64,000 bases of DNA. It comes from Malacoraja senta. Taxonomy: Eukaryota. The position numbers and the translations under genes are program-made. Under the pieces are notes generated by a model. It was not told the DNA's origin. It did no database searches and was given only the letters and a program-made list of their open reading frames with translations. Positions 387-40,763 of this stretch are shown here, one piece after another; within the stretch, counting starts at the first letter, position 1, and each line of letters opens with the position of its first letter. Location: positions 179,924,001 to 179,988,000 of the forward strand of contig CM075978.1 of assembly GCA_038087875.1 (NCBI GenBank). Direction: 5' to 3'.

Positions 387-441
387 ATGGAAACCAGTAT
401 GATATTTCACTTACTGCCAGTCGTTGGGAATATTTGCAGAG
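387..441 (+). CDS. Gene A leader (signal peptide) exon METSMIFHLLPVVGNICR(G)
   Basis: ATG at 387, hydrophobic core, phase-1 donor AG|GTACGA, 157-bp intron to the V exon; paralogous to 32610-32664. Confidence 0.8.
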
Positions 442-598
442 GTACGACTTTGATCGTTGTTCCATCTGCTTTGGTTGTAAAATAATTACAGACACGTTGA
501 CACCTTAATGTAGCTACTTGTAAGGTTGTCCCTTTTATTCTACCGTCCGTATGCCGTCATCAACATAATCACCTTTCCGTGACTGTGTTTCCTAACAG

Positions 599-893
599 GT
601 GGGGAACAGATTTCAAACAACTTACAGCAAATGCCCAAAGAAGTGATTTTACACAAAGGAGGGAACACCACATTCTACTGCATATTCCCTATTTCTCGAG
701 ACCAATCTCGGGTAATAGTCAAATGGTGGAAACAAGGCGAGAATGAATGCCAACGTGCAAGTACCGACGACAGGAAAAGTTTTGGCGTGAGTGGTCGAGC
801 AAGCGGGTACTTTGAGTTGAAGAATGCAAAGATCCAAGATTCGTATAGGAATGGCTCCAAGAAATTCAACCGGATCACGTCTAATAGTATATG
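599..893 (+). pseudogene. Gene A V-set (VJ-type) exon with 26-bp deletion
   Basis: Acceptor TTTCCTAACAG|, TTFYC (B-strand Cys), VKWWKQG (C-strand Trp), donor ATG|GTAAGC. The GVYQCSVI codons present in the paralog are missing (295 vs 321 nt). Confidence 0.92.
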
Positions 894-1482
894 GTAAGCG
901 AAAAATAATTGGAGAAGGGAGAATTCATTGTGGAATATAATGGTTTGGTAAACCGAATCACTGTGAAGATGTCCTTTAATGCCTTTTGTGTATGTTATGT
1001 TCAGTATATCTGTTCTATCGCTCTATCTACATTCTGCGAACAAGAGGGTTGAAACTCCGCATGCCTATCCTCCTTTATGAAATTCGGCTCCACTTCACTC
1101 ATCTCGCCAAAATTGGAAACGCGACGTGCGATTTTATAAAATCAAATTAATATTTTTAAAATTCCTTCAAAGTTCATCATGGATCTCTAACCTATGAAAG
1201 TCCAATAAGTGCAAGAAAATATTTCCTTGAATGTTCATTGAGTTGCAGTCGGTTGAATTGTGCAGTTTTGCCCAAACCAGGATGCAATCGCTCCAGTGTT
1301 GTCAGCATTAACTGAAAGTGAACAAATGCCCATGTTCTACTTCTTTAGTTGGAGAATGTTACTCAGATCACATATTTTAAATGACCTTGGCCAATTCACT
1401 CTGGCATCACCTAATTAATCTCCCTAAATTTTATAATTCTGACGTGAAGCGCAATGGAACTTAATATACAAAGTTCGTAAAT

Positions 1483-2205
1483 TCATTTCGTTGCCTGCAG
1501 TCATACATATAATAATAAATGACAAAACACACAATAAACACAAATTAACATCCACCACAGTGAGTTCACCAGGTACCTCCTCACTGTGATGGAGGCAAAA
1601 GTCTTAAAGTCTCTGTCTCTTCCCGCTTTCTTCTCCCTCTGCGCTGAGGCGATCCAGGCTTCTGATGCTGTGGCCCCGCCGGGCGACGGTAAGCCAGTCC
1701 AGCGGCCGAATCCGTGCTCCGCGACGGGCCGGCTCAAACTCCGCGGCCCGGGGTGGTCGAAGCTGCCGAAGCTACCGCCCTCCAGTCCAGCGGACGCAGC
1801 TGTAGTTGCGGGAGCCCCAGAAAAACAGGTCACCAACCTGTGACCTGCGCGCTCCCGACGATGTCGTCGGGCCGAGCCTCCGGATTCAGGTCGCCACCAG
1901 TGTCCTCGGTCGCCACCGCCGGAACGCCACCGCAGCCCCGAAGTTGGCCAGCCTCGCGCTCCCGAAGATGCCGTCCACTGGGCCAGCTGCGGCCGAGCCT
2001 CCGGATTCAGGTCGCCACCGCCGGAACGCCACCGCAGCTCCGAAGCCGGCCAGCCTCGCGCTCCCGAAGATGTCGTCCACTGGGCCAGCTGCGGCCGAGC
2101 CTCCGGATTCAGGTCGCCACCAGTGTCCTCGGTCGCCACCGCCGGAACGCCACCGCCACCGCCGGAACGCCACCACAGCCCCGAAGTTGGCCAGCCTCGC
2201 GCTGG
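1483..2205. mobile_element. GC-rich repeat insertion with internal ~102-141 bp tandem repeats, gene A intron 2 only
   Basis: Absent at the paralogous position (~33700-33720). Unit CCTCGCGCTCCCGAAGATG...CCGGATTCAGGTCGCCACC restarts at 1952, 2054 and 2195. Confidence 0.7.
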
Positions 2206-2760
2206 TAAGCATAGTCATAGGAGCAGACTAAGACAATTCGACCCATCGAGGCTACTGGGCCTTTCAATCATGGCTGGTCAATATTTCCATTTCAACCTCA
2301 TTTTCCTGTATTCGACTGATAACCTTTCACATACATACTAAATCAATAATCAATACATACAAATACTGTCCACATCCATTCTATCCAGGTCTTTCACTAT
2401 TTGGTAAGTTTCAATAAGGTCCCCCCCATATACCTCTAAACTACAGATTGTATAGGCCCAGAACCGTCAATCGCTCAATATACGTTTACCCAATCGTCCC
2501 CTGGATAATTCTCGTAAATATCCTCTGAACTCTTTTCAACGCCAGAACACCCCTCCTCAGATATGAGGGCCCAAAACTGTTTACAATACTCAAACGCGGT
2601 CTGACGATTGCCTTATGAAGCCTCAGCATTACATCACTGTTTTTGTTTATATTCCATTCCTCTCACAATAAATGCTAACGTTTTTAGTTACCATATATTC
2701 GATTTTAAAGAGGTTGATAAACATCTGCTATTGTATTGGGAAATTATGATAAATCAATGT

Positions 2761-3245
2761 CAATAGACAATAGACAATAGGTGGAGGAGTAGGACATTCG
2801 GCCCCCTTCGAGTCAGCACCGCCATTCTCTGTGATCATGGTTGATCTTACACAATCAGTACCCTGTTCCTGCCATCTCCCCATATCCCTTGACTCCACTA
2901 TCTTTAATAGCTATATCTAACTCTCTCTTGAAAGCATCCAGAAAATCGGCCTCCACTGTCTTCTGAGGTAGAGAATTCCACAGATTCACTACTCTGGGTG
3001 AAAAAGGTTTTCCTCATCTCGGTTCTAAATGGCCAACGCCTTATTCTTAAACTGCGGCCCCTGGTACTGGACTCCACCAACATCGGCAAAATGTTTCCTG
3101 TCTATAACATGTCCAATCCATTAATAATCTTCTATGTTTCAATAAGATCCACCCTCATCCTTCTACATTTCAGTGTATACAAGTCGCAGTATACAGTCAC
3201 TCCATTCTTTCAACATAGGACTGTCCCGCCATCCCGGGAGTTAAC
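2761..3245 (-). mobile_element. CR1 LINE 3' fragment (shared with paralog 34363-34838)
   Basis: (CAATAGA)n tail; ORF2 C-terminal remnant RGRSLRIRRWPFRTEMRKTFFTQ. Confidence 0.85.
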
Positions 3246-4807
3246 CTTCGTCACAAAAATAGTGTCGAAATATTAGCAGAGTAAAACACAAATCCTGCCA
3301 CCTATTCACATTACAATAGTAGAAGAAAAGGAAACGTACGTCTCAAGAACATTCACTTGAAAACGTTTCTCATCATAAACACGGTCTGAACATATTGCTA
3401 CTACGGAGTCTCAGAGTTGCACAGCACAGGAACAGCCTTCCGGTCCGCCACGTCCATCCGACCTATTTTTCCATCTAGACGAATTCAATTTTTAGGCCCT
3501 TAGCTACTACGAGTTGCCTATTAGAATGTCTGTGAATTCCTATTAACCTGGTGATTTTATCTGACTACAGCACCTACGCTGGATGCCAATTGCAGATAGC
3601 AACCTCTCTGTGTAAAAATCGTCCTTTCAGATTCCCTTTGAAAACCCCTGTCCTTTAATTTTGGCATAAGCCTTCTACGATGGAAAAAAAACGTTCCATG
3701 TATCGTCCATTTATGCTTCTTGTAACTTGATATACGTCCACCAGATCACACCACGGTTGTGTTCGCACCAGGGAAACAAACCGGGCTCAATCCCGGCAAA
3801 TTCAAAATTCATACGGAATCTCTTCTGTACCTCCCCCCCTTCCCCTCCAAGGACAACCACGACGGGGACAATCACGACTTTCGTACAATGTGGAATCCAG
3901 AACTGCCGCGAAAACTCTAAATGTTAATTTAACGCTTTTGGTAAAGTTCTTACATAAGGTCCCAACATTTATATTTTATGTCCTCGCCTATGAAGGTATG
4001 TCGTCTGCACCATCTTGCCTATCCCTGTTGCCATATTCGCGGAACCTTGGAGTTGAATCCAAAGGTCTCTCCATTGATCAACATTCCTTAGCGCTCTAAT
4101 ATATACTGAATATTTCCACCATATTCGACTTCACAATGCGCATCACCAGGCAGTTTTCGGGTGTACATTGCATTTGACTACGCTCAACCACTTCCCAGCT
4201 GATCTCTGACAGGCTACATTTCTGTTTAAAATTCTTGATGAGAAATACAGCTGGTGTGAGGGGTTAAAAAGCCAGCAAGCTATTCACTGCTTGTCAACTG
4301 ATTAGCGTAGAGAGCTGATGTGTGCAAAAACTCAAACACCAACCGCACTCTCCTGAAAGAGTTGATATAGTTCGCAGGATGTAATGTGTTGGTGAAAGAA
4401 CATATTCTCCTCACCATTTTCTGTGCTCCTGCTCTGCTTCTTCTGCAAAACCGACTCGCTTTCTCACTTGATCAATAATGATGTGCAGAAAACTCATCGT
4501 TATCTTTGAGTAAAAAACTCAGAGAATCCCATCGTGGTAACATATGTCGAGTTGTATTTGATTTATTATTCAAACTCTAATAAGATAAACCTACATAAAT
4601 ATTTGAAGAAAGCGTCATTAGCACTGAATTGGCAAGACTCGTGAAACACCGGCCTGGAAGAGAGATTTGGATCAGGTATGAGCACCTGGTCTAGGTAATA
4701 TCAAATACATTTTCCAATGCGTCATTATAACAACGCACTCGAGGTTAATAATAGCAACCCGTCAACGGCGTAATGTGATTTAATTGTGTTCATGTTCTGT
4801 TCCGCAG

Positions 4808-5152
4808 CACTTCCAACTCCACTGAAAATTTTCACCAAGACTCGTGTAATGAATCCAGCCGCGAGTTGTATTCATGTGTGTGAAACAGCTGCATTCTATC
4901 CCGAGAATTTCACGCTTAATTGGTATACAAATGGGGTCGAAACAACATCGGAAATACAGATCGAAACAAAGAAGAACGCCGAAGGACTGTATACGGTTTC
5001 TAGCTCTTTGATCGCGTTGCCGCCATTTCAGAGCGACAACAAATATACCTGTTTAATATCTCACGTCTTCCGCAATACATCAGCCCAGGCTGTCATCGCT
5101 GGTTCCGAATGTACCCAAGCTACGCTGCCAACAAAGCTATCTCGTACCCAAG
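4808..5152 (+). CDS. Gene A C1-set Ig exon
   Basis: Acceptor TTCTGTTCCGCAG|; VCETAAFYPENFTLNWYTNG, GLYTVSSSL, YTCLISH (C1-set signatures); donor CAAG|GTACGA; phase 1/1. Confidence 0.92.
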
Positions 5153-5320
5153 GTACGATGCCAACAAAGCCATTACTTAAATGTAAACTACTATTTCTAT
5201 TTTTTCCTGTCCGCGAGGAAAATTCACCTTAGTTCAATTAAAAGTTGCAGTTCTCTTTAATTAAAACAATGAAACCCAATCTCTTGCAACACCGGATACA
5301 ACAAACCTATTATCAATTAC

Positions 5321-5497
5321 GTTTAAGAAAGAACTGCAAATGCTGGAAAATCGGAGGTAGACAAAAATGCTGGAGAAACTCAGCGGGTGAGGCAGCATCT
5401 ATGGAGCGAAGGAATGGGTGTCGTTTCGGGTCGAGACCCTTCTTCAGACTGATGTGAAGAAGGGTCTCGTCTGAGGAAGGGTCTCGACCGGAAACTT
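5321..5497. mobile_element. Penelope-like terminal mini-insertion with inverted arms and 14-bp TSD
   Basis: TSD CTATTATCAAT(T/C)AC at 5307-5320 and 5498-5511; single copy of this motif (empty site) in the paralog near 38072-38086; 15-bp perfect inverted repeat at 5432-5446/5455-5469. Confidence 0.8.
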
Positions 5498-5944
5498 CTA
5501 TTATCAATCACATTCGTTTTCAATGAAAATGTCTTATTTGTTCTCCAAAATAGAAAAACAAATTTAAACATTTTGCCTTTCTACTGGGTAGTGTTGATGT
5601 TTCTTTCATGTTGCTTTAAAAAAGGTTTCCTAATGCACCGTTGATTCCACACTTGGCGGCGCAACTGATTTCAGGTGCTTAGGTTTTCCCTCACGCTTCC
5701 TCGGTTTTTATCCTGATGCAGAATCTTTGCTTCACCGTGCTCACCCTCGTTAAAATCGAACTACCCATCCTCCCTAAATTCCTTGGTACGTCATCCACTC
5801 CCACTGCCACCGTGACAAATTCAAGTACGGACCTAAAAGTAACGCCTTTCTAAACTGAAAGGACACCTTTAGCAGATTAAAACCGACAATTATGTTGTGT
5901 TATAATTGAAGAGAGGCTTCGATTGAGGCGTCCAACACTGCATT

Positions 5945-6609: not shown

Positions 6610-6715
6610 TTAATGCTTTCGCCTTCCACATTAGACATGCTCTGGCCTCTCTGGTGCCCCTGATCCTGATTGGTGTCGTTATTGGGACGCACTGTCAGTT
6701 GCCGTTTTATAAAAG
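6610..6715 (+). CDS. Gene A transmembrane exon (V)NAFAFHIRHALASLVPLILIGVVIGTHCQLPFYK(R)
   Basis: Acceptor TATTTCTGCAG|, phase 1 in; hydrophobic stretch ALASLVPLILIGVVI; donor AAAG|GTACGT, phase 2 out. Confidence 0.8.
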
Positions 6716-7726: not shown

Positions 7727-7751
7727 GGTCTATGAAAAAGCCATAAAGTAG
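7727..7751 (+). CDS. Gene A putative last coding exon (R)VYEKAIK*
   Basis: Strong polypyrimidine acceptor CCCTCTCTTGTTTGTGCAG|; phase-2 frame stops at TAG 7749-7751, and the other two frames also stop within a few codons. Confidence 0.55.
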
Positions 7752-9789
7752 AGAGTGCTGGAAATCTCAAGCAGGATCAACCAAGCGACACCCAATGAAC
7801 CTGACCACCATTGAAGCACCAGCCTTCCAGCGAATACTGTATGGCTACCCAAGATGATTGTAATTGTAAGATGTGCCTACCACAGCAGCCTACAAAAAGT
7901 AAACGTTAATATTTTGAAGTTCATCCTACAGACGAATTAGATATAGGCACTGAAATTCAGGAAAAATAATATGTTCAGTATCGTTCGACGTACTCACGGC
8001 TACATTATTGACTGTGAGTTACTTGTGGGATTAATGATTACATATTTGACGCCTTGCTTTACTACTATGAAAATTAATGCATATTTTGAAATATGTGTTG
8101 TGTTTAACTGATAAAGTAACTTTCCAAACGCTTTGAATTACGTTATTATTATTAGTTACATAACTAAAATAGACGTTTTATGGTTACTTCTGATCGCTCG
8201 GTGATTTTCAATGTATTTGTTATTTCCGAAAGAAAAACTGTGAGGCGAGGGATTTAGGCACTATATTGTTCTGTCGCATCTCATTGTGACCTAAATACAA
8301 ACAGTTTTCAGCATACCAAAGACTATAGACACTTTATTTTTCACAACAACCACCACAACGTTTTGTCGAGAGTTTGATCAATTTCCATTGAAATCTATTC
8401 TGACAAAAATATATTTTTAACGCATTTATACTATAACCATTGTACTACCGAGGTATTTTCTAAGATGGTAGAGCGTATATAATTCCGAGGCAATAAACAA
8501 TAGTTTAATTATTAGAAATTACCTTAAAAAGAACCAAATGCATGGTAGTGCAGGAGGTGGTCCGTAGTGTTCTGCTGTTAAGGTAGGATCATTAGTTTCC
8601 AAGCACTTTCAGGAACCTGATCGTTGTAGGAGAATAGCGAATTGAATCTGGCAATGTGCGCTTCAGTACCCCATGCCTAATAGTTGCAGTGAAACGCGGG
8701 AATGGCGCGGTTAATAGGGGTTCAGATCCAAAGCACTATATTCATATGATTTGTTAACATGTACAGTATGTAACGAAATGTCTTCTGATCACCGCGGTGT
8801 ATATATTACCGATCGCGTTGAGGCCACTTATTCTCCACGTCACAACAAGGGGTCGTTGAGCTCCTTATCTACTCTGTTCAGTCGCTTTATATGCATTTAG
8901 ACTCAACATTGATGAAGTAATTTGCAACAATCAAAATCACCTTTTTTTGCAATGTGTTAATAAAACCATTGGTCTGTCATTTTCTTCATACGCCTTGAGA
9001 CCATTTCCCCCATTAATCTTTGGTTCCACCTACAGTTAAATGCAAGTTGATGTCAGGTTTATATTTTCGCTACCATTACATTTTATTCGTCAAATGTAAT
9101 GAAGGCCCGTGGAGCAAGATGGCAATGATTGTATCATTGCATTAGTCAGTGAGCAGAATATTGTAAATGACTCTTCACAGCAGTGCTGTTGATATTCGAC
9201 CACATCATCAAATGTTCCGACGGCAATTACCCATATAGGATGTGTCCAATCTTTGCAAACATGGGTAATATAGTTAATTAACGAGAAAACGGCTGCCACA
9301 CAATAATTTGATCCAGCGTCATGAAATTCCTGCATATCCCATTTCCGCCCAACCAGCATGCAAAGATCAAATTAATACATTTACCTGGAAAAAAAACACC
9401 CTTGACAGTATTAAAAATAAACCTGCCGGTACTTCTAGAAGGCTTTTCCATGAAATTCGCCAGAATGTCTTGCTCCAGTGTTCATTTGACTCCAGCTCCA
9501 CCATTTTCAACACAGTAAAGAGGTGGAGAAGTAGACCATTTGGTATGTTTCGCTGCTCTTTCATCCAGCATAACGCCGAATAATCAGTGCCAACTTCCTG
9601 CATTATTCTTATTTAATTCGAATACATTCATGCATAACGTATTGTTCCTGNNNNNNNNNNNNNNNNNNNNNNNNNNNNNNNNNNNNNNNNNNNNNNNNNN
9701 NNNNNNNNNNNNNNNNNNNNNNNNNNNNNNNNNNNNNNNNNNNNNNNNNNNNNNNNNNNNNNNNNNNNNNNNNNNNNNNNNNTATTCAC

Positions 9790-10995
9790 ATACAATGAAT
9801 TTCCCTTGGTGCTCCGCCCACAAGTAACAACATGACATACAGTGACAGTTACGAATGACTCAGAAAACACTAAACATTAATAATAATAAAACATTAATGA
9901 TAAAACACCATCGATCAAGCATGTGAACCAACAAAATGCCAGATCAAAGGGAGGCTACAGAGTTTTGGCTGTTGAGTAGAGCAACTACTCGTGGATAAAA
10001 AGTGTTTTTATGTCTGACTGTGGCAGCTTTGACAGTCCGGAGTCGCCTTTCAGAGGGAAGTGATTCAAAGAGTTTGTGGCCAGGGTGAGAGGGGTTAGTG
10101 ATGATCTTGCCCACTCGCTTCCTGGCCTTTGCAGTGTACAGCTCATCAATGGAGGGAAGGTTGCAGCCAATAACCTTCTCAGCTGATCGGACGATTCGCT
10201 GCAGCTTCTAGGTGTCGTGCTTGGTGGCTGAGCCAAACCAGACCATGATGGAGAAAGTGAGAACAGACTCTATGATGGCCGTGTAGAATTGGACCATCAT
10301 TGCTCGTGGCAGATTGTGTTTCCTCAGCTGCCATAGGAAGTACATCCTCTGTTGTGCCTTTTTGACTGTGGAGTCGATAGTAGCCCCCCACTTAAGGTCC
10401 TTGGAGATGATGGTTCCCAGGAACTTAAAAGACTCCACAGATTTGACTCTGGTGTTTTTGATAGTGAGTGGGGTGAGGGGAGGGGGAGCTCTCCTAAAGT
10501 CTACAATCAATTCCACTGTCTTAAGAGCATTGAGTTCTAGGTTGTTGCGATGGCACCAGTATGCCAGCTGTGACACTTCCTGTCTGTAGGCAGATTCCTC
10601 CCCATCCTGGATCATTCCAATCAGGGTTGTGTCATCCGCAAACTTGAGAAGCTTGACAGAGGTGTCTGTGGAGGTGCAGTCATTGGTGTAGAGGAGAGGA
10701 GAGAGTATGCAGCCTTGCGGTGCTCCTATGCTGAGTGTTTGCGGGTCCGAGATGTGCTTTCCCAGCCTAACATGCTGCTTCCTGTCTGTCAGGAAGCTGG
10801 TGATCCACTAACAGAGGGGTTCAGGCACAGTCAACTCGGAAAGTTTGGAGTGTAGTAGTTCTGGCACAATGGTGTTGAATGCAGAGTTAAAATCAACAAA
10901 CAGGGTCCTCGCATAGGTCCCCTGGTGCTGTAGGATGAAGTGTAGGCCCACGTTGACTGCATCATTCACAGATCTATTGGCCCGATATGCACTGT
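9790..10995 (-). mobile_element. Rex1/Babar-type LINE, 3' part, decayed
   Basis: ORF remnants YARTLFVDFNSAFNTI and NNLELNALKTVELIVDFRR...FKFLGTIISKDLKW...KKAQQRMYFL. Confidence 0.85.
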
Positions 10996-11202: not shown

Positions 11203-12667
11203 CTAGACTAAGTGGGACCTGTTGGGCCCCAGTTTCACATGGGAGGGCTGGTCCCCCAATGCAATATTTCACTTCTCCACCAATTCCAATATTGCTGGCC
11301 AGTGGGGGGGGGGGGGGCGACGGAGGGGCTTTCTGGAGCGCTAGCATGGATGTTGTGGACCGAAGGGACTGTTTTCCAGAGGGCTAGTAAGGATATTGTG
11401 GGCCGANNNNNNNNNNNNNNNNNNNNNNNNNNNNNNNNNNNNNNNNNNNNNNNNNNNNNNNNNNNNNNNNNNNNNNNNNNNNNNNNNNNNNNNNNNNNNN
11501 NNNNNNNNNNNNNNNNNNNNNNNNNNNNNNNNNNNNNNNNNNNNNNNNNNNNNNNNNNNNNNNNNNNNNNNNNNNNNNNNNNNNNNNNNNNNNNNNNNNN
11601 NNNNNNNNNNNNNNNNNNNNNNNNNNNNNNNNNNNNNNNNNNNNNNNNNNNNNNNNNNNNNNNNNNNNNNNNNNNNNNNNNNNNNNNNNNNNNNNNNNNN
11701 NNNNNNNNNNNNNNNNNNNNNNNNNNNNNNNNNNNNNNNNNNNNNNNNNNNNNNNNNNNNNNAAATATGACAGTAAACTTCCTTGAATCTACTCACACGG
11801 CTGAGCGCGGCCGCTCCACTATGGGGCTTCCGCAGTCAGCGGCACTTCCACAATCAGTGTGACCTCTGCACTTACCGGAAATTATGTAATCAGTGCGACT
11901 CTGAACTCACCAGAAATTACGCAATCAGCGCGATCGGTCCACTTAGCGGAAGTCACGAAATGAGCGGACTTTTGGACTAAACACAGTCGGACCTAATAAA
12001 GCATTTATTCCTTCCAAATACAGTCAGACCTAATAAAGCATTTATTCCTTCCAAACACAGTCGGACCTAATAAAGCATTGCATTTTCAAGCACAGGCAGG
12101 GCAGCAGGCCAAACAACTCATGGCATTGTCATTTCATTTCATTTCATTTCCAATTTAGCATTGCACGTTCAAGCACAGGCAGGGCGGCAGGCCTAACAAC
12201 TCATGGCATTGTCATTTCATTTCATTTCATTTCATTTCATTTCATTTCATTTCGTTTCCATTTAAGTATTGCACATTCAAGCACAGGCAGAGCAGCAGGC
12301 CAAACAACTCATGACATTGTCATTAAGGGCGAACAAATCATTTATTGGAACTACATTGCAGACTCACAGTTCAGTTGATTCACAGCTTAGAATGACAGTC
12401 GTGGCCTCTCCCTCGTGATCTTGCAGAGTGACTGACTCACGTCCAGACACCAGGGGTTTTATAGTCCTGCCCCCCCCGGAAGGGGAGTTACCTTCATCGC
12501 AGTGATTGACAGGTGACAGAACCAATCAGCTGTTCTCAAGGTTTTTTAAACACTCATAACTTTTTTATTTTTCATCGATGGGAAAAATCACAGCGATACA
12601 GTGTAGCGTTTTTTCTAAAATAAATATAGAGCGCAAGTGGTCAAGATGAGTCTTTTAATTATATAGA
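11203..12667 (-). mobile_element. Non-autonomous Helitron
   Basis: On the minus strand: 5' A|TCTATATAATTAAAAG, and 3' imperfect GC hairpin (plus 11214-11230) followed 7 nt later by CTAG|T. Inserted between A and T with no TSD. Contains an N gap and internal repeats. Confidence 0.7.
11985..12320. repeat. Internal tandem repeats of the Helitron: 3x GGACCTAATAAAGCATT unit, 3x CAAGCACAGGCAG...CAACTCATG unit, (ATTTC)n
   Basis: Direct inspection. Confidence 0.85.
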
Positions 12668-14774: not shown

Positions 14775-15700
14775 ATGTCAGGCAAGCTGATTCAGTGCGA
14801 TGCTTGCAGTATGTGGGAGGTCAAGGCACCGCTGGTGCCTCTGGCTGCTACAAATGCGAGAAGTGCATCCAGGTAGAGCTCCTGAAGGGCCGTGTTGGGG
14901 AACTGGAGAAGCAAGTGGATGACCTCCGGTTCGTCCGAGAAACGGAGTCGTTCCTCGACAAGCCCTACAGTACGATTGTTACACCTAAGGTACTGGAAGA
15001 GAGAAGGTGGGAGACAGTGAGAAAGGGAGGGAAGCATGGAATGCCAACGTCCCCGGGTGTTGTACCACTTGTGAACAGGTTCACCCGCTTAGAAGCTGTT
15101 GGGACAGAAGACGTGTTTACACTGAGCGGCGGACTGGCTTGCGATCCGAATAGGGCTGTTGAGCCAAAACCAAAAAGGCCTAAGGCAGGCAACGCCATTG
15201 TAGTGGGAGACTCCATTGTAAGAGGTACGGACAGGGGTTTCTGCGGCAACAGACGGGATGCGAGGATGGTGTGCTGCCTTCCTGGTGCCAGGATCCAGGA
15301 TGTCACGGACAGAGTGCAGAAAATCCTCAAGGGCGAAGGTGAACATCCGGAAGTGGTAGTGCATGTCGGCACAAACGATGTCGGAAAGAAGGGGATGAAT
15401 ATTCTGCAGCGTGACTTTAGAGAGCTCGGAAAAATGCTGAAAAGCAGGACCTCCAGGGTTATTATCTCCGGTTTGCTTCCAGTTCCTCGTGCTGGCGAGA
15501 GCAGGAACAGGGAGATACGGGACCTGAACGTGTGGCTGAGGAACTGGTGCACGGGGAAGGGATTTAGATTCTTAGATCACTGGGATCTGTTTTGGGGTAA
15601 GGGGGAACTGTACAAAAGGGACGGATTGCATCTTAACAGGTGTGGGACCAGCATTCTGGCAGGCAGGTTTGCCACTGCTACACGGGTGGTTTTAAACTGA
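14775..15700 (+). pseudogene. CR1 ORF1: Cys zinc finger, coiled coil, SGNH/GDSL esterase; one frameshift near the N-terminus
   Basis: MSGKLIQCDAC then, in the shifted frame, CYKCEKC; VVGDSIVRG and VHVGTNDV esterase blocks. Confidence 0.85.
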
Positions 15701-27481: not shown

Positions 27482-28685
27482 CAGGGCCGGATTTAGATGA
27501 AGAGAGGCCATAGGCTATTCCACTTGTGAGGCTCCTCCAAATCCCCCACCCGCATGACGAGAGGAAGATGGAAGAGTCCACCAGATTGACACCGATGTGC
27601 AGCCGAGCGTGGCCAATGAGATAAGGGCTGGAAAGCTGCGCTTTTTATTTATTGCCAGTGCTAATGTCGAGTTATCGGCTTAAAACACTATTATTTTGAA
27701 ATGGAGGGCAAGGAAAATTAGTGGTGTTGTTTAGAGACTACAGTTCGTTGTGACAGCGTATGTAAGAAAGGCCTATGACAGTCAAAAATATTATACACCA
27801 GGCCCGTACGAAGTTTTTCAAAAAGGGGGGTGGCATGGCAAGATTACAAAAGTTTAATGTGAAATAAGTGCATGCAGCGCATATCACAAGCGCGAAGCTC
27901 AAAGACCCTTGCGGCCGTGGTCCAGGGCCACTTAAGGGCCCTGGAAGATCTGGGGTTTTAGATGCTCTCTGGTGCATTCTGAGCCTTATTTTGGAGCATT
28001 TTTGCACAAAATGTATGACCAATATTTCAGAAATAATTTTGGTTGAGTCAAGAGTAATGAGTGGTTGGAATGGGATGATTGGGATCATTGTTCTATACAT
28101 TTTTTTAAATCAAGAATTGAAGCTGTCCTTGTTTTAATCATCAAGTTGTACTGTAAAATGTTATGTAAAATGTTATAAAGGAGCATGCAAACACTGCAAA
28201 TAAAATACTGTAAGTTTTTGCAGTAAATAAAACCTTTTATTAGAAAATGTTTTGTTTGTTCATTTCATTGCCTGTTACTGTTTGACTGTGTTAGTGTGTG
28301 CACATTAAAAATATGATGCAAAATGAAAGTCGCAAACTATGGAATACATGTTTTTCAGTATTGTTCTCAAGGAAAAGAAAGCGATTCCAATTGTTTGATA
28401 TTATTCATACGGAGGAGAAAATATAATTGCTCTAAAACCTACCTTAATTTTGCAATCTCACTAAAGATAATCCCCCTTTCCCTCTCCCCCTCCTCTTTCC
28501 CCCTCCCTCTCCCTCCCCCTCCACCTCTCTCTCCCTCCCCATGTCTCTCTCCCCCTCCCCTTCCCCTCTCTCCCCCCTCTCTCTCTCCCCCTCCCCTCCT
28601 CTCCCCCCTCTGTCTCAACCCCCCCTTTCCCCCTCTCACACCCCCCTCTCTCTCTCTCCCTCCCTTCCCCTCTCTCTCCCTCCCA
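27482..28685. mobile_element. Putative non-autonomous DNA transposon pieces (CAGGGCCGGATTTAG and CAGGCCCGTACGAAG starts) with CT-rich tract
   Basis: hAT-like CAGGG/CAGGC termini; 28300-28470 is homologous in inverted orientation to 48730-48890. Partner TIRs not found. Confidence 0.45.
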
Positions 28686-32010: not shown

Positions 32011-32609
32011 ATGCAACGAGAATCCGGCTTGATCAACGCTCGGTCCCAGTGCCTCTGCCCAACCGCCCACTGAATCGCGACCGGGAACACAAGTGATCAC
32101 GGACTGACATATAAGCAGATGCTGATCGATGGAGCACACGTTCGAGTCAACAACCAGAGTATCGTGCATTTATTTTATGCAGTCTGCGAAAAAATCCTAC
32201 TTACTATTGATAAATTGATTTTGAATATCGATGACAGTCCACACGGTGCAAAAAAAATTGGTATTAACGAACTACATTGTGGACATAAATGGGGCATGTC
32301 TGCTTGAAATCTTGCCAATTTTCTGTGTCGTCATTTCTATGTCTTATATGATCGACAATTAAATTTAAGATTGAGAGTAGGAGTAAAGCACGCACTAAGA
32401 AGAATACAATTTAAATGATAATTTCCACTACTTTGCTACGTGCGGCCGATTTGATTTTAGAAGACGTTCGAAATCCAACCAGTCAAATGATATTTGCAAC
32501 CTTCGGTTACAGGATATGAATCATCCTTCATCGGCTGTAAACCACGCCCTCACTTTAAACTTTCCAACGCTGCTTTCTGCAGACAAACTAGTTGTAGCTG
32601 GTGGCCGGA

Positions 32610-32664
32610 ATGGAAACCAGTATGATATTTCACTTACTGGCAGTCGTTGGGAATATTTGCATAG
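32610..32664 (+). CDS. Gene B leader exon METSMIFHLLAVVGNICI(G)
   Basis: Signal-peptide-like, phase-1 donor AG|GTACGA, 158-bp intron. Confidence 0.85.
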
Positions 32665-35600
32665 GTACGACTTTGTTCGTTGTTCCATCTGCTTTAGCTT
32701 ATAAAATAATTTCCAACACGTTTACACCTTAATATAGCTACATGTAAGGTCGTCCCTTTTATTCTACCGTCCGTATGGCGTCATCAACATAATTACCTTT
32801 TCGTGACTGTGTTTCCTAACAGGTGGGAAACAGATTTCATACAACGTAGAGCTAGCGCCCAAAGAAGCGATTTTAATCAAAGGAGGGAACGCCACATTCT
32901 ACTGCATATTCCCCATTTCTAAAGACCAATCTCGGGTAAGAGTCAAATGGTGGAAACAGGGCGAGAACGAATACCAACGTGCAGGTACCGACGACAGGAA
33001 ACGTTTTGGCGTGAGAGTTCGAGCAAGCGGGTACTTTGAGTTGAAGAATGCAAAGATCCAAGATTCTGGAGTGTATCAGTGTTCAGTGATTCGTACAGGA
33101 ATGGCTCCAAGAAATTCAACCGGATCACGTCTAATAGTATATGGTAAGCGAAAAATAATTGGAGAAGGAAGAATTTATCATGGAATATAATGGTTTGCAA
33201 ACCGAATCACTGTGAAGATCTCCTTTAATGCCTTTTTGTGTATGTTATGTTCAGTATATCTGTTCTATCGTTCTATCTACATTCTGCTCTGCATGCCTAT
33301 CCTCCTTTATGAAATCCGGTTCCACTTCACTGATCTCGCCAAAATTGGAAACGCGATGTCCGATTATATAAAACAAATTAATATTTTTTTAATTCCTTCA
33401 AAGTTCATCATGGATCTTTAACCTATGGAAATCCAATAAGAAAATATTTCCTTGAATGTTCATTGAATTGCAGTCGGTTGAATTGTGCAACTTTGTCCAA
33501 ACCAGGATGCAATCGCTCCAGTGTTATCAGCATTAACTGAAAGTGAACAAATGCTCATGTTCTACTTCTTTAGTTGGAGAATGTTACTCAAATCATATTT
33601 TTTAAATGGCCTCGGCCAATTCACTCTGGCATCACCTAATTAATCTCCCTAAATGTTATAATTCTGACGTGAAGCGCAATGGAACTTAATACACAAAGTT
33701 CATAAATGCATGTTCATAAGTCATAGGAGCAGACTAAGACAATCCGACCCGTCGAGGCTAATGGGCCATTCAGTCATGGCTGATCAATATTTCCCTTTCA
33801 ACCTCATTTTCCTGTCTTCGCCTCATAACCTTTCACATACATACTAATCAAAACCCCGTCAATTTCAGCTTTAAAAATACAGAAGTCTTGCAAGCCACGG
33901 CCATCTGAGGTAATTAATTCCACAGTTTCATCACCCTCTGACTAAAGAAATTCCTCATTGTCTCCTTTCTAAACGAATGTCCTTTTGTTATGAGACTGTG
34001 CCCACTGGTAAGTTTCAATAAGGTCCCCTCCATATACTTCTAAACTACAGATTGTATAGGCCTAGAACCGTCAATCGCACAATGTACGTTAACCCAATCG
34101 CCCCCCTGGATAATTCTCGTAAATCTCATCTAAACTATTTTCAACGCCAGAATATCCCTCCTCAGATATGGGGGCCCAAAACTGTTTACAATACTCCAAC
34201 GCGGTCTGACCATTGCCTTATGAAGCCTCAGCATTACATCCCTGTTTTTTATTTTTTAATATTCCAGTCCTCTCTCAATAAATGCTAACGTTTTTAGTTA
34301 CCTTATGTTGGAGGTAGGTAAACATCTGTTATTGTATTGGGAAATTATGATAAAGCAATGTAAATAGACAAAAGACAATAGGTACAGGAATAGGCCATTC
34401 GGTCCTTCGGGCCAACACCACCATTCGCTGTGATCATGGCTGATCATACACCATCAGTACCCCGTTCCTGCCATCTCCCCATATCTCTTGACTCCGCTAT
34501 CTTTAATAGCTGTATCTAACTTTCTCTTGAAAGCATCCAGAAAACCGGCCTCCACTGTCTTCTGAGGCAGAGAATTCCACAGACTCACAACGCTGGGTGA
34601 AAACGTTTTTCCTCATCTCCGTTCTAAATGACCTATGCCTTATTCTTAAACTGTGGCCCCTGGTACTGGACTCCCCCAACATCGGGAACATGTTTCCTGC
34701 CTCTAACATCTCCAATCCCTTAATAGTCTTTTATGTTTCAATAAGATCCACTCTCATCCTTCTAAATTTCAGTGTATACAAACCCAGTCACTCCATTCTT
34801 TCAACATATGACTGTCCAGCCAGCCCGGGAATTAACCTTCGTCACAAAAATAGTGTCGAAATATTACCAGAGTGAAACATAAATGCTGCCACCTATTCAC
34901 ATTACAATAGCAGACGAAAAGGAAATGTATGTCTCAAGAACATTCACTTGAAAACGTTTCTAATCATAAACATGGTGGAACACATTGCTACTTGGAGTCT
35001 CAGAGTTGCACAGCACAGGAACAGCCTTCCGGTCCGCCACGTCCATCCGACCTATTTCTCCATCTATTCAAATTCAATTTACCAGCGTTAGGTCCTTATC
35101 TACTACGACTTGCCTCTTGGAATGTCTGTGAATCCCCAGGGCCTGATGGTCTGCATCCCAGGGTACTTAAGGAAATGGCTCTAGAAATCGTGGATGCATT
35201 GGTGATAATTTCCCAATGTTCTATAGACTCATGATCAGTTCCTGTGGATTGGAGGGTAGCTAATGTTATACCACTTTTTAAGAAAGGCGGGAGACAGAAA
35301 ACGGGGAATTATAGACCAGATAGCATGACATCGGTGGTGGGGAAGATGCCGGAGTCAATTATAAAAGATGATATAGCCGCACATTTGGATAGCAGTAGCA
35401 GGATCGGTCCGAGTCAGCATGGATTTACAAGGGGAAATCATGCTTGATTAATCTTCTGGAATTTTTTGAAGATGTAATTACGAAAATGGACAAGGGAGAG
35501 CCAGTGGATGTAGTGTACCTGGACTTTCAGAAAGCATTTGATAAGGTCCCACATAAGAGATTAGTGTGCAAAATTAGGGCACATGGTATTGGGCATAGAG

Positions 35601-38600
35601 TGCTGACATGGATAGAGAAGTGGTTGGCAGACAGGAAACAAAGAGTAGGGATTAACGGGTCCCTTTCAGAATGGCAAGCAGTAACTAGTGGGGTACCGCA
35701 AGGCTCGGTGCTGGGACTGCAGCTATTTACAATATACATCAATGATTTGGATGAAGGGATTCAAAGTAACATTAGCAAATTTGAAGATTGCACAAAGCTG
35801 GGTGGCAGTGTGATCTGTGAGGAGGATGCTATAAGAATGCAGGGTGAATTGGACAGGTTCGGGGAGTGGGCAGATGTATGGCAGATTAAGTTTAATGCGG
35901 ATAAATGTGAGGTTATCCACTTTGGTAGCAAAAACAGGAAGGTAGATTACTATCTAAATTGCGTCAAGTTGTGAAAAGGGAAGTACAACGGGATCTGGGG
36001 GTCCTTGTACATCAGTATGAAAGTAAGCATGCAGGTACAACAGGCAGTGAAGAAAGCGAATGGCATGTTGGCCTTTATAACAAGAGGAATCGAATATAGG
36101 AGCAAAGAGGTCCTTCTACAGTTATACAGAGCCCTAGTGAGACCACACCTGGAGTATTGTGTGCAGTTTTGGTCCCCTAATTTGAGGAAGGACATTCTTG
36201 CTATTGAGGGAGTGCAGCGTAGGTTTACAAGGTTAATTCCCGGGATGGCGGGACTGTCATATGCTGAGAGAATGGAGCAGCTGGGCTTGTACACTCTGGA
36301 GTTTAGAAGGATGAGAGGGTGTTCATTGAAACATATAAGATTGTTTAAGGCTTGGACACACTAGAGGCAGGAAACATGTTCCCGATGTTGGGGGAGTCCA
36401 GAACCAGGGGCTACAGTTTAAGAATAAGGAGTAAGCCATTTAGAACGGAGACGAGGAAACACATTTTCTCACAGAGAGTAGCGAGTCTGTGGAATTCTCT
36501 GCCTCAGGTTATCTGGATGCTTTCAAGAGAGAGCTAGATAGGGCTCTTAAAAAAGCGGAGTCAGGGGATATGGGGAGAAGGCAGGAACGGGGTACTGATT
36601 GGGGATGATCAGCCATGATCACATTGAATGGCGGTGCTGGCTCGAAGGGCCAAATGGCCTACTCCTGCACCTATTGTCTATTGAATTCCTATTAACTTGT
36701 TGATTTTATCTGACTACAGCACCTACGCTGGATGCCAATTGCAGTTAGCAACCTCTCTGTGTAAAAATCGTCCATTCAGAATCCCTTTGAAAACCCCTCT
36801 CCTTTAATTTTAACATAAGCCTTCAACGATGGGAAAAAAACGTTCCATGTAACGTCTATTTATGCCTCTTGTAACTTGATATACATCCACCAGATCACAC
36901 CACGGCTGCGTTCGCACCAGGGAAACAAACCGGGCTCAATCCCGGCAAATTCAAAAATCGTACCGAATCTCTTCTGTATCCCCCCCCCCCCCCCTCCAAG
37001 GACAACCACGACGGGGACAATCATGACATTCGTCCAATGTGGAATCCAGAACTGCCGCGAATACTCTAAATGTTGATTTACGCTTTTGGTAAAGTTCTTA
37101 CATAAGGTCCTAACATTTATGTTGTCTGTCCTCGCCTACGAAGGTACACCTGAAAGAGTTGATATAGTTCGCAGGATATAATGTGTTGGTAAAACAACAT
37201 ATTCTCCTCACCATTTTCTGTGCCCCTGCTCTGCTTCTTCTGCAAAACCGACTCGCTTTCCCACTTGATCATTAATGATGTGCAGAAAACACATCGTATC
37301 TTTGAGTAAAAAACTCAGAGAATCCCATCGTGGTAACATATGTCGAGTTGTATTTGATTTATTATTCAAACTCTAATAAGATAAACCTACATAAATATTT
37401 GAAGGAAGCGTCATTATCACTGAATCGGCAAGACTCAGGAAACATCGGCCTGGAAGAGAGATTTGGATCAGGCATGAGCACCTAGTCTAGGTAATATCAA
37501 ATACATTTTCCAATGCGTCATTATTACAGCGTACTCGAGGTTAATTATAGCAACCCTTCAACGGCGTAATGTGATTTAATTGTGTTCATGTTCTGTTCCA
37601 CAGCACTTCCAACTCCACTGAAAATGTTCACCAAGACTGGTGAAATGAATCCAGCCGCGAGTTGTATTCATGTGTGTGAAACAGCTGCATTCTATCCCGA
37701 GAATTTCACGCTTAATTGGTATAAAAATGGGGTCGAAATAACATCGGAAATACAGATCGAAACAAAGAAGAACGCCGAAGGACTGTATATGGTTTCCAGC
37801 TCTTTGATCGCGAGACCGCCATTTCAGAGCGACAACAAATATACCTGTTTAATATCTCACGTCTCCCTCAATACTTCAGCCCAGGCTGTCATCGCTGGTT
37901 CCGAATGTAGCCAAGGTATGATGCCAATAACGCCATCTTCTTTTCAATTCGTAAAAGTAAACTATTTGTTCCAGTCCGCGAGGAAAATTCGCCTTAGTTC
38001 AATTGAAAGTTGCAGTTCTTTTTCATTAAAAAATATGAAACCCACTTTATTACAAGAATGGATGCAACAAACCTATTATCAATTACACTCGTTGTCAATG
38101 AAAATTTCTTATTTGTTCTCCAAAATAGAAAAACAAATGTAAACATTTTGCCTCTCTACTGGGTATTGTTGATGTTTCTTTCATGTTGTTTTCAAAAATG
38201 TTTCCCAATGCACCGTTGATTCCACACTTGGCGGCACAACTGATTTCAGGTGCTTAGGTTTTCCCTCACGCTTCCTCGGTTTTTATCCTGATGCCGAATC
38301 CTTTGCTTCGCCGTGCTCACCTTCGCTAAAATCCAACCACCCCTCCTCCCGAAATTCCTCGGTGCGGCATCTACTCCCACGGCCACCGTGACAAATTCAA
38401 GTACGGAATTCTAAAAGTATCGCCTCTCTAAACTGAAAGGACATCTTTAGCAGATTAAAACCGACAATTATTTTGTTTTATAATTGAAGGGAGGCTTCAA
38501 TTGAGGTGTCAATACTGTCGCCAACGGACACGGTATAATTTAGTAAATTGACAGAATAGGGGGGATGTCTCGCTGCGAAGATCAATTCAGCATAAGAAAT

Positions 38601-40763
38601 TTGTCCGATATTTTAATTACTTCAGGGTATATATTGTAAGACTTACTTACATTGTAAGTCGTCCTGCGTATACAGTTTGTTATCTTTTGCTGTCCTGTAT
38701 TTGCGGTGTTTCCTGTAGAGTTGCCAATCCTGTCTCACTTTCACCACGAGCATTAAGCATCACCCTACCCACAACCGCCCCACACACCCTCGTCCATGAA
38801 GAATAGCTGGCAACCACCATAACATGTATTCCTACAAACCCTACAGGTTCTGCCGGCAAACTACTTTCGGCCGTGGCACCTGGTGGATTGTTTATTTTAG
38901 TGCTAATTATCGTTATTTGGTTGCGGTGCCGAAAACAGAAAAATAAGGGTAAGTTCTAGCGATAATAATGAACTGTAATATTAGTAATTGGGGTCAAAGA
39001 TAGTGACTGTTTCAGCAACATCTCAGTTCAGTCAATGCCTTTATCGGAAGTAATACCCGAACAGCCAGTCCATTGAGAGTGCACAATGGAGAAAGGCCAA
39101 TCAAGGACACAGTTAGGTCACCAATGACGAGGTAACAGAGATTCATGGTCTGCTTTAAACTTTCACAGTATACATTGCCTCTTACAGGCAGATCAAAGTA
39201 CTGTACACGTAACACAAGCACCCAACGCCCACAAGATCGTCCGAATCCACGAGCAGGATAAAGAAAATACAAACATATACAAATCAGGAGAGGCATGGGT
39301 AGGGTAGACTGTCAGAACGATTTCCCCGGGAATAAAATATCAAATTCAAGAGGGTATAGCTTTAGGTGTGAGGGGTAACGTTTGGAGATGTGGGTGGTGA
39401 GTGCCTGACACGCGCTGCCTGGGGGGGGGGGGGGTTGAGGCAGATAGGACAGTGGTATTTACTCGATTTGGATGGGCACTTGGAATAGAGGAATGCGATT
39501 ACGTGCAGGTTGTGTGAGCGTTTGTCTTGGCATCGTGTCCAGCACAAACATTGCGGGCCGAAGGGTGTTTTCTTCTATCGTCTCACTCTCCCACGTATTT
39601 CCCTGTAATCTATTAAGTCCGTCATTTTTTCCTGCCTATCGCCTACTCTGAGTTAAGAAGAGAGTGTTCATTTGACCTAACCAGTGTTCAGTGCAATGTG
39701 GCAGAATCTGGAGCATATGCGATCAAAAGATTCCACAGTGGAAGCTGCTAACTTCGCAATTGAACCATGGATGCTGAATCCACGAGACAATTAGATTAAC
39801 TACTGCAGCGTAGTAACGCTTCTGGCTTCGTGCTGAGTATACGTAGATTTGTAATTACTGCCTTAAATGATTCTACCTTTTTTAGACTATTTTTTGCAGG
39901 TAAAGAGGAAAGTTTTGGTGAACCAAATCGTCACGAGCAGCTGGTATGTTTATGTTTTTATTGCAGCATGGCATTTACAGGGGCAATGCTATAAAATAAG
40001 CGATCGGACAATCATATTCGAACCGTTTATTTATGTATAGTGAACATACTTGGCCATTTCAATGGCCAAGTGTTTAAAACCAATAGCTTATTCGTAAAAC
40101 GTACACCAGTAAAACACTGCCATTACGTTCCTTTATTCATTGTATTTGAAAAAAGACATTTTGGCTTTTGAATCTACAGTTCTTGTAAAGCCATTCATAA
40201 TACCCCCAATTTACCCATTTGAACATCAAATCGGCGGCCATTTTATGTACATAAATGCATACGTTAATGCACCTCATCTTTATTTTGGTTAAATCCATTT
40301 ACAATGCGACAGAAGGACACGAAAGCGTCGAGTCATATAATAAGAACCCTTCTTTCCGAATGATGCAGGGAGCAGAAGCTGCGACCGGTTATATCGCCGC
40401 CATGCATTTGAGCAAACCCAATTGCATTCCAAAACGAAAACTGGATGGTATGCAAACCACGTATGATCAGGTGAGGCTGTTTGATTAGCAAAATAGCTAA
40501 CAATCAAAGCAAGTGAAGGCTGACGATTTCACATGCGACTTGAGAAGCAATATCAAAAGCTAGTAAAACAATTAATTAACTGTGTTTTTAAAAACTGCTT
40601 ACAGACAGTGCGGGAGAATTCAAGTGACGAGCTGTCGTATGCGACCTTAGCATTCACTGGCAAAAGGAATGTGAGAAAATGTACAGAAAAGGCAGAGTAC
40701 GCCGAGCTACAGATAAACAAACACAGCGGAGTAGCAGAGGTTGTCTATTCAAGAGTAAGATGA
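32610..40763 (+). CDS. IgSF receptor gene B (leader-VJ-C1-TM-ITIM tail), inhibitory type; one frameshift in TM exon as assembled
   Basis: Exons 32610-32664, 32823-33143, 37604-37915, 38847-38949, 39900-39943, 40369-40470, 40605-40763, all GT/AG. Removing one T from 38891-38894 gives 1095 nt = 364 aa + stop. Confidence 0.85.
32823..33143 (+). CDS. Gene B intact VJ-type V exon
   Basis: GKQISYNVELAPKEAILIKGGNATFYCIFPISKDQSRVRVKWWKQGENEYQRAGTDDRKRFGVRVRASGYFELKNAKIQDSGVYQCSVIRTGMAPRNSTGSRLIVY; 321 nt, phase 1/1; both Cys, the Trp, DxGxYxC and a J-like G-strand present. Confidence 0.95.
35134..36682 (+). mobile_element. 5'-truncated CR1 in gene B intron 2, absent from gene A
   Basis: TSD GAAT at 35130-35133 and 36683-36686; empty site TCTGTGAATTCCTATT at 3529-3544. 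Confidence 0.88.
37604..37915 (+). CDS. Gene B C1-set Ig exon
   Basis: VCETAAFYPENFTLNWYKNG...GLYMVSSSL...YTCLISH...AGSECSQ(G); 312 nt; donor CAAG|GTATGA. Confidence 0.93.
38847..38949 (+). CDS. Gene B transmembrane exon (with +1 T); possible longer stalk version starting at 38721
   Basis: Corrected reading GSAGKLLSAVAPGGLFILVLIIVIWLRCRKQKNK(G): hydrophobic stretch followed by a basic stop-transfer; donor AAGG|GTAAGT. Confidence 0.75.
39900..39943 (+). CDS. Gene B cytoplasmic exon 1 (G)KEESFGEPNRHEQL
   Basis: Acceptor TATTTTTTGCAG|, donor CTG|GTATGT; phase 1 to 0. Confidence 0.7.
40369..40470 (+). CDS. Gene B cytoplasmic exon 2 GAEAATGYIAAMHLSKPNCIPKRKLDGMQTTYDQ
   Basis: Acceptor ...GATGCAG|, donor CAG|GTGAGG; 102 nt, phase 0/0. 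Confidence 0.6.
40605..40763 (+). CDS. Gene B last exon with ITIMs: TVRENSSDELSYATL...AEYAEL...VVYSRVR*
   Basis: Acceptor CTGCTTACAG|; ITIM consensus (I/V/L/S)xYxx(L/V) met at 40632-40649 and 40740-40757; TGA at 40761-40763. Confidence 0.85.
   Translation, partial: TVRENSSDELSYATLAFTGKRNVRKCTEKAEYAELQINKHSGVAEVVYSRVR

Follow-up and report, generated by a model that had tools for sequence, protein, structure and literature searches.

Does the skate Malacoraja senta carry a working pair of activating and inhibitory immune receptors that are built on an antigen receptor-like ectodomain? The question is raised by a stretch of 64,000 nucleotides (contig CM075978.1, positions 179,924,001 to 179,988,000 of the forward strand), referred to here as the window and numbered from its first nucleotide, in which two genes, A and B, lie in tandem. 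Paired activating and inhibitory receptors recur in vertebrate innate immunity, as in KIR, LILR, SIRP and NITR, and are poorly charted in cartilaginous fish, the oldest jawed vertebrates. An initial annotation of the window had proposed that A and B form a pair of this kind, with nearly identical leader, variable (V) and C1-set exons joined to unrelated transmembrane (TM) and tail exons. The reading that we favour, with moderate confidence, is that the locus holds one working inhibitory receptor, gene B, and one decaying copy of the activating type, gene A, within a family in which the signalling ends have been exchanged many times. The proposal of paired receptors accordingly stands at the level of the family; it fails at the locus as assembled, where gene A is frameshifted and no intact activating member is found.

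Gene B and its chondrichthyan family

Gene B spans positions 32610-40763 and consists of seven exons, all with GT-AG introns and compatible phases, that give an open reading frame (ORF) of 1095 nt and a protein of 364 aa (Table 1). Sequence reading and homologue mapping place the parts in the order leader, V domain with a germline-joined J-like end, one C1-set domain, uncharged TM span and cytoplasmic tail. The V exon stays in one open frame across the J-like strand and up to the splice donor, the family consensus for this strand being NGTGSxLxV. The tail contains exactly five tyrosines and two canonical immunoreceptor tyrosine-based inhibitory motifs (ITIMs), LSYATL and VVYSRV, and its AEYAEL is an instance of the family motif TEYAE[LIV]. 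Homologues match each of the exons, and the tail is kept in rays and sharks. Among RefSeq models, residues 3-362 of gene B align with Mobula hypostoma P0167 (51% identity over 364 aa) and residues 1-364 with Heptranchias perlo P0171 (48% over 372 aa), and the TM plus tail are 52% identical to Hemitrygon akajei P0176 over the full length of that part (E 6e-37). The uncharged TM, the five-tyrosine tail and the two ITIMs foreseen for gene B were thus borne out, both by exon reading and by colinearity with homologues. Judged from its sequence, gene B is an intact inhibitory-type receptor gene. It appears to be unannotated, and no protein of the clade that holds A and B was found from any skate in the protein collections searched.

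Two other readings of the 3' half of gene B were set aside. Another frame for the exon at 40369-40470 ends in a stop and resembles the Narcine tail RHAFEQ; it was rejected, as the adopted frame fits a family repeat in several species and is in phase 0 on both sides. Splicing of the TM exon directly to the last exon via a second AG is possible in phase and became unnecessary once cytoplasmic exons 1 and 2 had been found by homology.

The family was defined by a full HMMER scan with the gene B V exon, which returned 56 proteins at E<=1e-10. With giant multi-immunoglobulin (Ig) proteins set aside, the best members are V-C1-TM proteins of 220-400 aa. They are found in sharks, rays and chimaeras, namely in Hypanus, Hemitrygon, Mobula, Narcine, Leucoraja, Scyliorhinus, Mustelus, Heterodontus, Chiloscyllium, Hemiscyllium, Stegostoma, Carcharodon, Cetorhinus, Heptranchias and Callorhinchus, under inconsistent NCBI names (tapasin-related-like, SIRP-alpha-like, SIRP-beta-1-like, lambda light chain-like, NCR3LG1-like, CD276 homolog and class II beta-like). 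In every species for which the look-up covered several members, these share one chromosome, and those of Callorhinchus fall into runs of neighbouring LOC numbers, which indicates gene clusters. The locus of Hypanus sabinus (CM057990.1) has the same exon plan, and a second family C1 exon (46% identical; L003 4700-4993) located 9 kb upstream of the orthologue implies a tandem array there too. In an IQ-TREE phylogeny of 64 ectodomains, A and B are sisters (support 100) inside a batoid clade (99) that lies within a clade of 13 rows with shark orthologues (99), which agrees with the earlier suggestion that the DNA comes from a cartilaginous fish. By homology, A and B are members of a multigene family present across cartilaginous fishes. 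The matches of a family profile search were exclusively chondrichthyan, the search being limited by word matching so that absence elsewhere does not follow. No paper describing this chondrichthyan family, or SIRP-like or paired receptors in sharks, was found in a literature search that was poor in subscription journals and leaves novelty unproven; the family is seemingly undescribed.

The two types of signalling end can be told apart in the family alignment, in which one TM column has Gly as its usual residue and Arg in some of the members. The relation of this Arg to the ITIM was tabulated for the 54 rows with a scorable TM, A and B counted. No ITIM-type motif was present in 15 of the 17 rows with a TM Arg, as compared to 16 of the 37 rows without one, the motif being carried by 2 and 21 rows, respectively (Fisher p 0.0026, uncorrected for kinship). 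The tails of most Arg members are 1-35 residues long. The Arg state underwent at least 12 changes on the ectodomain tree, and among 8 phylogenetically independent pairs Arg went with the short tail in about 6 and the opposite was seen in none (median sign-test p 0.03). Hypanus P0003, with an Arg TM and a short tail, and Mobula P0167, with an uncharged TM and an ITIM tail, share 83% identity. On this evidence the paired-receptor design belongs to the family as a whole, among whose predicted proteins the two forms have often interconverted. Frequent conversion between activating and inhibitory forms is known for KIR and Ly49.

These observations suggest how the family might work. Its members would be type I membrane receptors with an Ig light chain-like ectodomain composed of a non-rearranging V with a J-like strand and a single C1. 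Ligand binding by the V domain of gene B would be followed by phosphorylation of the tail tyrosines by Src-family kinases, and SH2 phosphatases of the SHP-1/SHP-2 type would then be recruited to the ITIMs and dampen activation, as in SIRP-alpha. By analogy with other receptors, the Arg of Arg-TM members would pair with the Asp of an adaptor that carries an ITAM (immunoreceptor tyrosine-based activation motif), such as FcR-gamma, CD3-zeta or DAP12. When the Arg sits in the outer TM third, FcR-gamma and CD3-zeta are more typical partners than DAP12. Activating-type and inhibitory-type signalling ends would have been swapped many times on closely related ectodomains.

Two side observations concern the membrane region. 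The TM of shark proteins P0032, P0037, P0078, P0093, P0104, P0148 and P0180 has an outer Arg plus an inner Asp/Glu-His (IVDH, IFDH, IVEH, IMDH), for which we have no explanation. Furthermore, the C1 of both skate copies, and of a public Logan contig, ends in a membrane-proximal Cys (GSEC-S/T/N-Q; window 37900-37915 and 5100-5120) where ray orthologues have SKSNQ. By analogy, this Cys hints at disulphide-linked dimers.

Gene A and its probable decay

Self-comparison of the window by blastn revealed two collinear copies that are 89-95% identical in DNA, introns included, over five blocks (Table 1). Both contain leader, V and C1 exons, which confirms the two tandem leader-V-C1 genes described at the outset, and the tandem segmental duplication of A and B is real. 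Paralogy stops abruptly at 5940/38517, within the C1-TM intron, and the copy A block may extend past the start of the window.

The description of the leader, V and C1 exons as nearly identical did not hold. The ectodomains (V plus C1) are 87% identical in amino acids, and gene A has a 26-bp deletion in V and a 33-bp duplication in C1. Alignment with B places the deletion between GATTC direct repeats, where it takes out the segment coding for DSGVYQCSV, including the second canonical Cys (YxC), and shifts the frame, and the assembled coding sequence runs into a stop 24 codons into C1. With the frame shifted and the Cys lost, gene A as assembled would yield no receptor product; as the exons read, it cannot encode a receptor. 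Skipping of the V exon would preserve the frame because the leader and C1 are both of phase 1, and there is no sign of such skipping. An exact look-up of the gene A V-exon ORF in public assemblies returned no match, which is uninformative either way on the deletion.

At conserved sites gene A further departs from both B and the family consensus, in V (ENEY>ENEC and RKRF>RKSF) and in C1 (WYKNG>WYTNG and SHVSL>SHVFR). Its original C1 donor has changed from GT to CT, and the second 33-bp unit supplies a new donor in the same phase that adds 11 residues. The rate of change was examined with a further, third copy of the C1 exon plus flanking sequence, contained as unspliced genomic DNA in Logan contigs from SRR090301 (L001) and SRR17051963 (L002). 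This copy shares about 90% identity with each of A and B, lies at the same distance from both (35, 22 and 37 unique changes), and is one more paralogue or else the orthologue of a different skate. When C1 nucleotide changes were polarised with L001 as the outgroup copy, 9 were specific to A vs 4 to B. The terminal branch of gene A in the protein tree is 0.10 vs 0.033 for gene B, or about three-fold longer, and for V plus C1 the ratio of nonsynonymous to synonymous substitution rates (dN/dS) is 1.34 when A is compared to B, whereas each copy gives 0.45-0.55 when compared to L001. Taken together, the deletion, the changes at conserved sites, the long branch and the dN/dS ratio point to gene A as a copy released from constraint.

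How such a copy might have arisen can be pictured as follows. The block from promoter to C1 would be common to A and B by duplication, or by gene conversion, ending in the C1-TM intron; gene A would continue into an Arg-bearing TM exon and almost no tail, the usual activating design of the family; and a slippage deletion of 26 bp in its V exon would have disabled it. The candidate TM exon has a hydrophobic core of 17-19 residues with a His-flanked Arg as the ninth residue of the exon. Its product has no BLASTP similarity to that of the gene B TM exon, in line with the initial description of the two as unrelated. We regard the TM exon of gene A as probably genuine. The GC-rich insertion at 1490-2210 in the V-C1 intron of gene A, with a 102-bp tandem repeat (1908-2121; 2.1 copies, 96% match), is not found at the same place in copy B.

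A number of points weigh against the picture of one working inhibitory receptor and a decaying activating-type copy. The family TM profile (59 segments) is not significant on the gene A candidate (E 0.5-1.2, fourth in the window), as compared to 1e-9 for the TM exon of gene B, and a homologue search with the last exon of gene A found none. The 26-bp deletion is known from one gapped assembly and may be an allele or, less likely, an error, and a dN/dS above 1 is also compatible with diversifying selection on a live gene. Arg is an imperfect marker of the activating type, P0042 and P0093 being Arg-TM members with ITIMs. No transcript evidence for A or B was found, the public contigs recovered with the C1 exon being unspliced genomic DNA. 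Lastly, the binding of ligand, adaptor and phosphatase is carried over from other families.

The first of these points bears on an unlikely alternative in which gene A never was activating. It would be a partial duplicate of the 5' half of B that was dead on arrival in unrelated DNA, and the TM and 8-residue exons would be chance frames. The end of paralogy at 5940, ahead of any TM exon, is what this would produce, and the profile result and the dissimilarity of the A and B TM exons fit it as well. So does the fact that no family exon, cytoplasmic exons included, was found by homology downstream of A or in the A-B spacer. The candidate is, however, the first of just three hydrophobic 19-mers in the 4.5 kb downstream of C1, and it has the required phase, a pyrimidine-rich acceptor and a consensus donor. 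It lies 1.46 kb from C1, a distance that is 0.93 kb in B and 1.0 kb in Hypanus. In addition, R-x-A-[LM] and a terminal IGTxC are common to it and the Arg-TM exons of Hypanus P0003 and P0169, its nearest relatives, and it is 37% identical over 32 aa to a Hypanus Arg-TM exon (local tblastn E 0.011, among about 90 queries). Of the initial claim of an Arg-bearing TM followed by an 8-residue exon, the exons exist with in-phase AG/GT sites; homology support was not significant for the TM exon, and no homologue was found for the last exon.

The points on the deletion and dN/dS bear on a second alternative, which we consider quite improbable, namely that both genes function as an activating and inhibitory pair and that the deletion is an assembly error or a null allele of the sequenced haplotype. 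In the other exons of gene A the frames are all open and the splice sites match the consensus, the 33-bp duplication makes up in frame for the mutated C1 donor, which might mean continued selection, high dN/dS is common among live paired receptors, and the assembly has gaps. Against this, the deletion is flanked by 5-bp direct repeats, like real slippage deletions, and is located in unique sequence. The changes at conserved leader, V and C1 sites and the longer branch described above also speak against it. The decaying activating-type copy remains the preferred reading of gene A.

Comparison with known receptor systems

The ectodomain had been called antigen receptor-like, and this was upheld: V and J-like strand share one exon, the C domain is of the C1-set, and the best PDB fold matches are Ig light chains. 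In single-sequence searches of the PDB neither exon found a close relative; the best matches were amphioxus IgVJ-C2 and PD-L1 for the V exon (E about 1e-5) and UrIg2, IgM and SIRP-gamma for the C1 exon. An AlphaFold (AF2) model of the closest relative, with a mean predicted local distance difference test score of 84, contains V, C1 and a TM helix. Compared to PDB structures, the model matched Ig light chains best, over the whole ectodomain, at E about 1e-15 and about 20% identity. Compared to Swiss-Prot models with Foldseek, it matched PD-L1, B7-H6, T-cell receptor (TCR)-beta, TAPBPR, CD276 and SIRP-alpha nearly equally (E about 1e-16 to 1e-15), and this comparison is non-discriminating. A protein-atlas comparison gave unnamed V-C1 clusters and SIRP-like clusters.

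Like Ig light chains and TCR chains, the family has a leader, a short intron, V, J-like strand and a single C1, and the Cys at the end of the skate C1 (SEC) is placed as the interchain Cys of light chains. It differs from Ig and TCR in that V and J-like strand form one germline exon that needs no rearrangement, in that A and B have Ser for the first Gly of the GxG bulge, and in that the chain has its own TM and ITIM tail.

SIRPs are defined by one V-set and two C1-set domains; the inhibitory form has ITIM-type tyrosines that recruit SHP-1/2, and its partners have a near-identical ectodomain, a TM Lys that binds DAP12 and a minimal tail (PMC12975943). The family is similar in its N-terminal V followed by C1-set, its type I membrane topology and its combination of ITIM forms with basic-TM short-tail forms, and many members have been auto-named SIRP-alpha-like or SIRP-beta-1-like by NCBI. 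Unlike SIRPs, A, B and the ray orthologue each have a single C1 exon rather than two separating V from TM, and the basic residue is an Arg near the outer TM end, in A and 17 family members, rather than a Lys. Contiguous V-J-C1 alignments of the family profile were obtained with IgA heavy chain (2e-39), UrIg2 (2e-37) and SIRP-alpha 2wng (1e-31, V plus C1). Orthology to SIRP is not shown by this, because Ig heavy chains and UrIg2 score as well or better in the same profile.

The initial annotation had also left room for genes of the UrIg type. In UrIg2 the V is joined by three to nine C domains, and the molecule forms dimers that are IgG-Fc-like (PMC12227049, PDB 9dmx). UrIg and UrIg2 are, like A and B, non-rearranging VJ plus C1 genes of cartilaginous fish. 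A and B, however, have a single C1 followed by the TM, and no paired ITIM/Arg forms are described for UrIg2. UrIg membership was rejected, as the top PDB score of the C1 exon sums three domains that each reach E of only 1e-3 to 6e-2 and the architecture differs. The term MgVC1, used alongside UrIg in the initial annotation, has 0 occurrences in PMC10751288, the sole paper searched for it. V-TM-tail members or isoforms without C1 occur in the family itself: P0005 (Narcine), P0015 (Callorhinchus), P0115 and P0199 (Mobula).

NKp30, of which lower vertebrates have multigene versions, combines a VJ-type V domain with an Arg at the outer TM boundary that couples to CD3-zeta/FcR-gamma. The family has a V domain of the same type, and P0005 and P0015, which are V-TM only, come close to NKp30 in architecture; A and B both have the C1-set exon that NKp30 lacks. 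NKp30 was not among the top 60 PDB matches of the V exon. PRARP of bony vertebrates, described by Fu et al. in 2019 (a paper cited in PMC10751288), reportedly combines a TM and an ITIM with a VJ exon that does not rearrange and, in non-avian species, with a C1. On that description it shares the VJ(-C1)-TM-ITIM plan and may be the nearest described bony-vertebrate family; it is not described as a large paired family. Lastly, NITR, KIR, LILR and CD300 resemble the family in forming multigene clusters whose ectodomains are common to ITIM forms and to short-tail forms with a charged TM, the two having repeatedly interconverted. Their membrane-proximal domain is I-type, C2-type or absent, whereas that of the family is C1-set (E 2e-10), and no NITRs are known outside bony fish.

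It is very unlikely that the family consists of B7-like ligands (B7-H6, CD276, PD-L1 type) with tail tyrosines for trafficking or reverse signalling: the Foldseek matches to PD-L1, B7-H6 and CD276, the NCBI names NCR3LG1-like and CD276 homolog and a weaker CD80-like C2-set Pfam match of the C exon would fit, but TCR-beta, TAPBPR and SIRP-alpha are equal in the same Foldseek search, the C domain is best as C1-set (2e-10 vs 2e-5), V ends in a J-like strand, and ITIM and TxYxx[LIV] motifs that alternate with Arg-TM short-tail versions are a hallmark of paired receptors.

Genomic setting and implications

The window is vertebrate DNA with much debris of long interspersed nuclear elements (LINEs) and long terminal repeat (LTR) elements. 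Apart from A and B it contains no other cellular gene, MHC genes included, only retroelements, and an Rfam scan of the window gave zero matches. Several copies of one LINE family (14795-18728 and 20281-23201 on the plus strand, with fragments elsewhere), having reverse-transcriptase (RT) ORFs of up to 619 aa, fill most of the 24.9-kb A-B spacer, and the same LINE family is also found within both V-C1 introns (2760-3250 and 34360-36680). Tandem arrays with a period of 36-39 bp, GC-rich and CT-rich, are located at 48422-48635 and 28479-28680, the former in an island of 53-60% GC (48-58 kb) that is mostly retroelement sequence.

Three N runs occur in the window, one of which (54905-55104) interrupts a gypsy-like element. 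The two inside the locus lie between the last predicted exon of gene A (7751) and the gene B leader (32610). No predicted exon or real ORF crosses either of them, no homologue-supported exon is nearby, and the ORFs that appear to run through them are strings of X. The minus-strand RT fragment at 9968-10990 is collinear with a plus-strand copy at 23880-24906 and stops before the second gap. A feature bridging either gap was sought by repeat collinearity within the window, and nothing matched across. The A-B distance is therefore uncertain and a hidden further exon of gene A is possible.

Table 1. Positions of the exons of genes A and B, the duplicated blocks and other features of the window
Feature	Position	Strand	Remarks
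Gene A leader exon	387..441	+	phase 1 donor; ATG and donor shared with B; Ala>Pro and Ile>Arg vs B and ray orthologue
Gene A V exon	599..893	+	26-bp deletion after 837; DNA alignment with B
Gene A C1-set exon	4808..5152	+	includes 33-bp tandem duplication (about 5120-5152); Pfam C1-set E 7.6e-9
Gene A predicted TM exon	6610..6715	+	Arg in outer third; phase 1 in, phase 2 out; pyrimidine-rich acceptor, consensus donor
Gene A predicted terminal coding exon	7727..7751	+	25 nt, 8 residues then TAG; pyrimidine tract and AG, phase fits
Gene B leader exon	32610..32664	+	ATG at 32610; followed by 158-bp leader-V intron
Gene B V exon	32823..33143	+	J-like end NSTGSRLIV, both canonical Cys; Pfam V-set/Ig_3; 61% identity to Hypanus XP_059849417
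Gene B C1-set exon	37604..37915	+	104 codons, phase 1 to 1, ends in membrane-proximal Cys (SEC); Pfam C1-set E 2.3e-10; tblastn of 13 family proteins
Gene B TM exon	38847..38948	+	span uncharged; 56% identity to Hypanus TM exon (E 6e-8); family TM profile E 1e-9
Gene B cytoplasmic exon 1	39900..39943	+	GKEESFGEPNRHEQL; matches Hypanus GNEECFTEANRSE and Hypanus paralogue GKEECLTEANQRE; phase 1 to 0
Gene B cytoplasmic exon 2	40369..40470	+	two Tyr; aligns with same segment in Mobula, Hemitrygon and Heptranchias proteins
Gene B last coding exon	40605..40763	+	ITIM LSYATL, AEYAEL, ITIM VVYSRV, stop; sequence reading; tail homology with Hemitrygon P0176
Copy A of duplicated block	1..5940	+	upstream region, leader, V, V-C1 intron, C1, first 0.8 kb of C1-TM intron; blastn
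Copy B of duplicated block	32221..38517	+	blastn against 1-5940
Assembly gap, A-B spacer	9651..9782		N run; no exon near
Assembly gap, A-B spacer	11407..11762		N run; adjoins minus-strand LINE RT fragment
LINE reverse-transcriptase ORF	50816..53305	-	829 aa
Gypsy-like LTR-element pol	54265..58183	+	protease, RT, RNase H, integrase; broken by N gap 54905-55104

The window adds one apparently unannotated, intact inhibitory-type gene and one broken partner to the family. We also consider a wider and rather improbable proposal, in which the family is a cartilaginous-fish survivor of the kind of gene into which the RAG transposon inserted. Such a gene would have been a membrane-bound, non-rearranging, light chain-like VJ-C1 chain that dimerised, in keeping with the light chain-like membrane-proximal Cys of the skate copies, and signalled via ITIMs or via TCR-like pairing of Arg with the Asp of an ITAM adaptor, and the family, with its repeated exchange of signalling ends on one ectodomain, would then represent an innate system under pathogen pressure that is older than, and runs parallel to, Ig and TCR.

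If this picture of the family is right, the family would offer a system in which the birth of activating receptors from inhibitory ones, and their death, can be studied, and gene A may be in the midst of dying. The family would also provide a further non-rearranging VJ-C1 lineage for trees of antigen-receptor origin, beside UrIg, SIRP and PRARP, and would supply candidate checkpoint-like receptors for shark and skate immunology.

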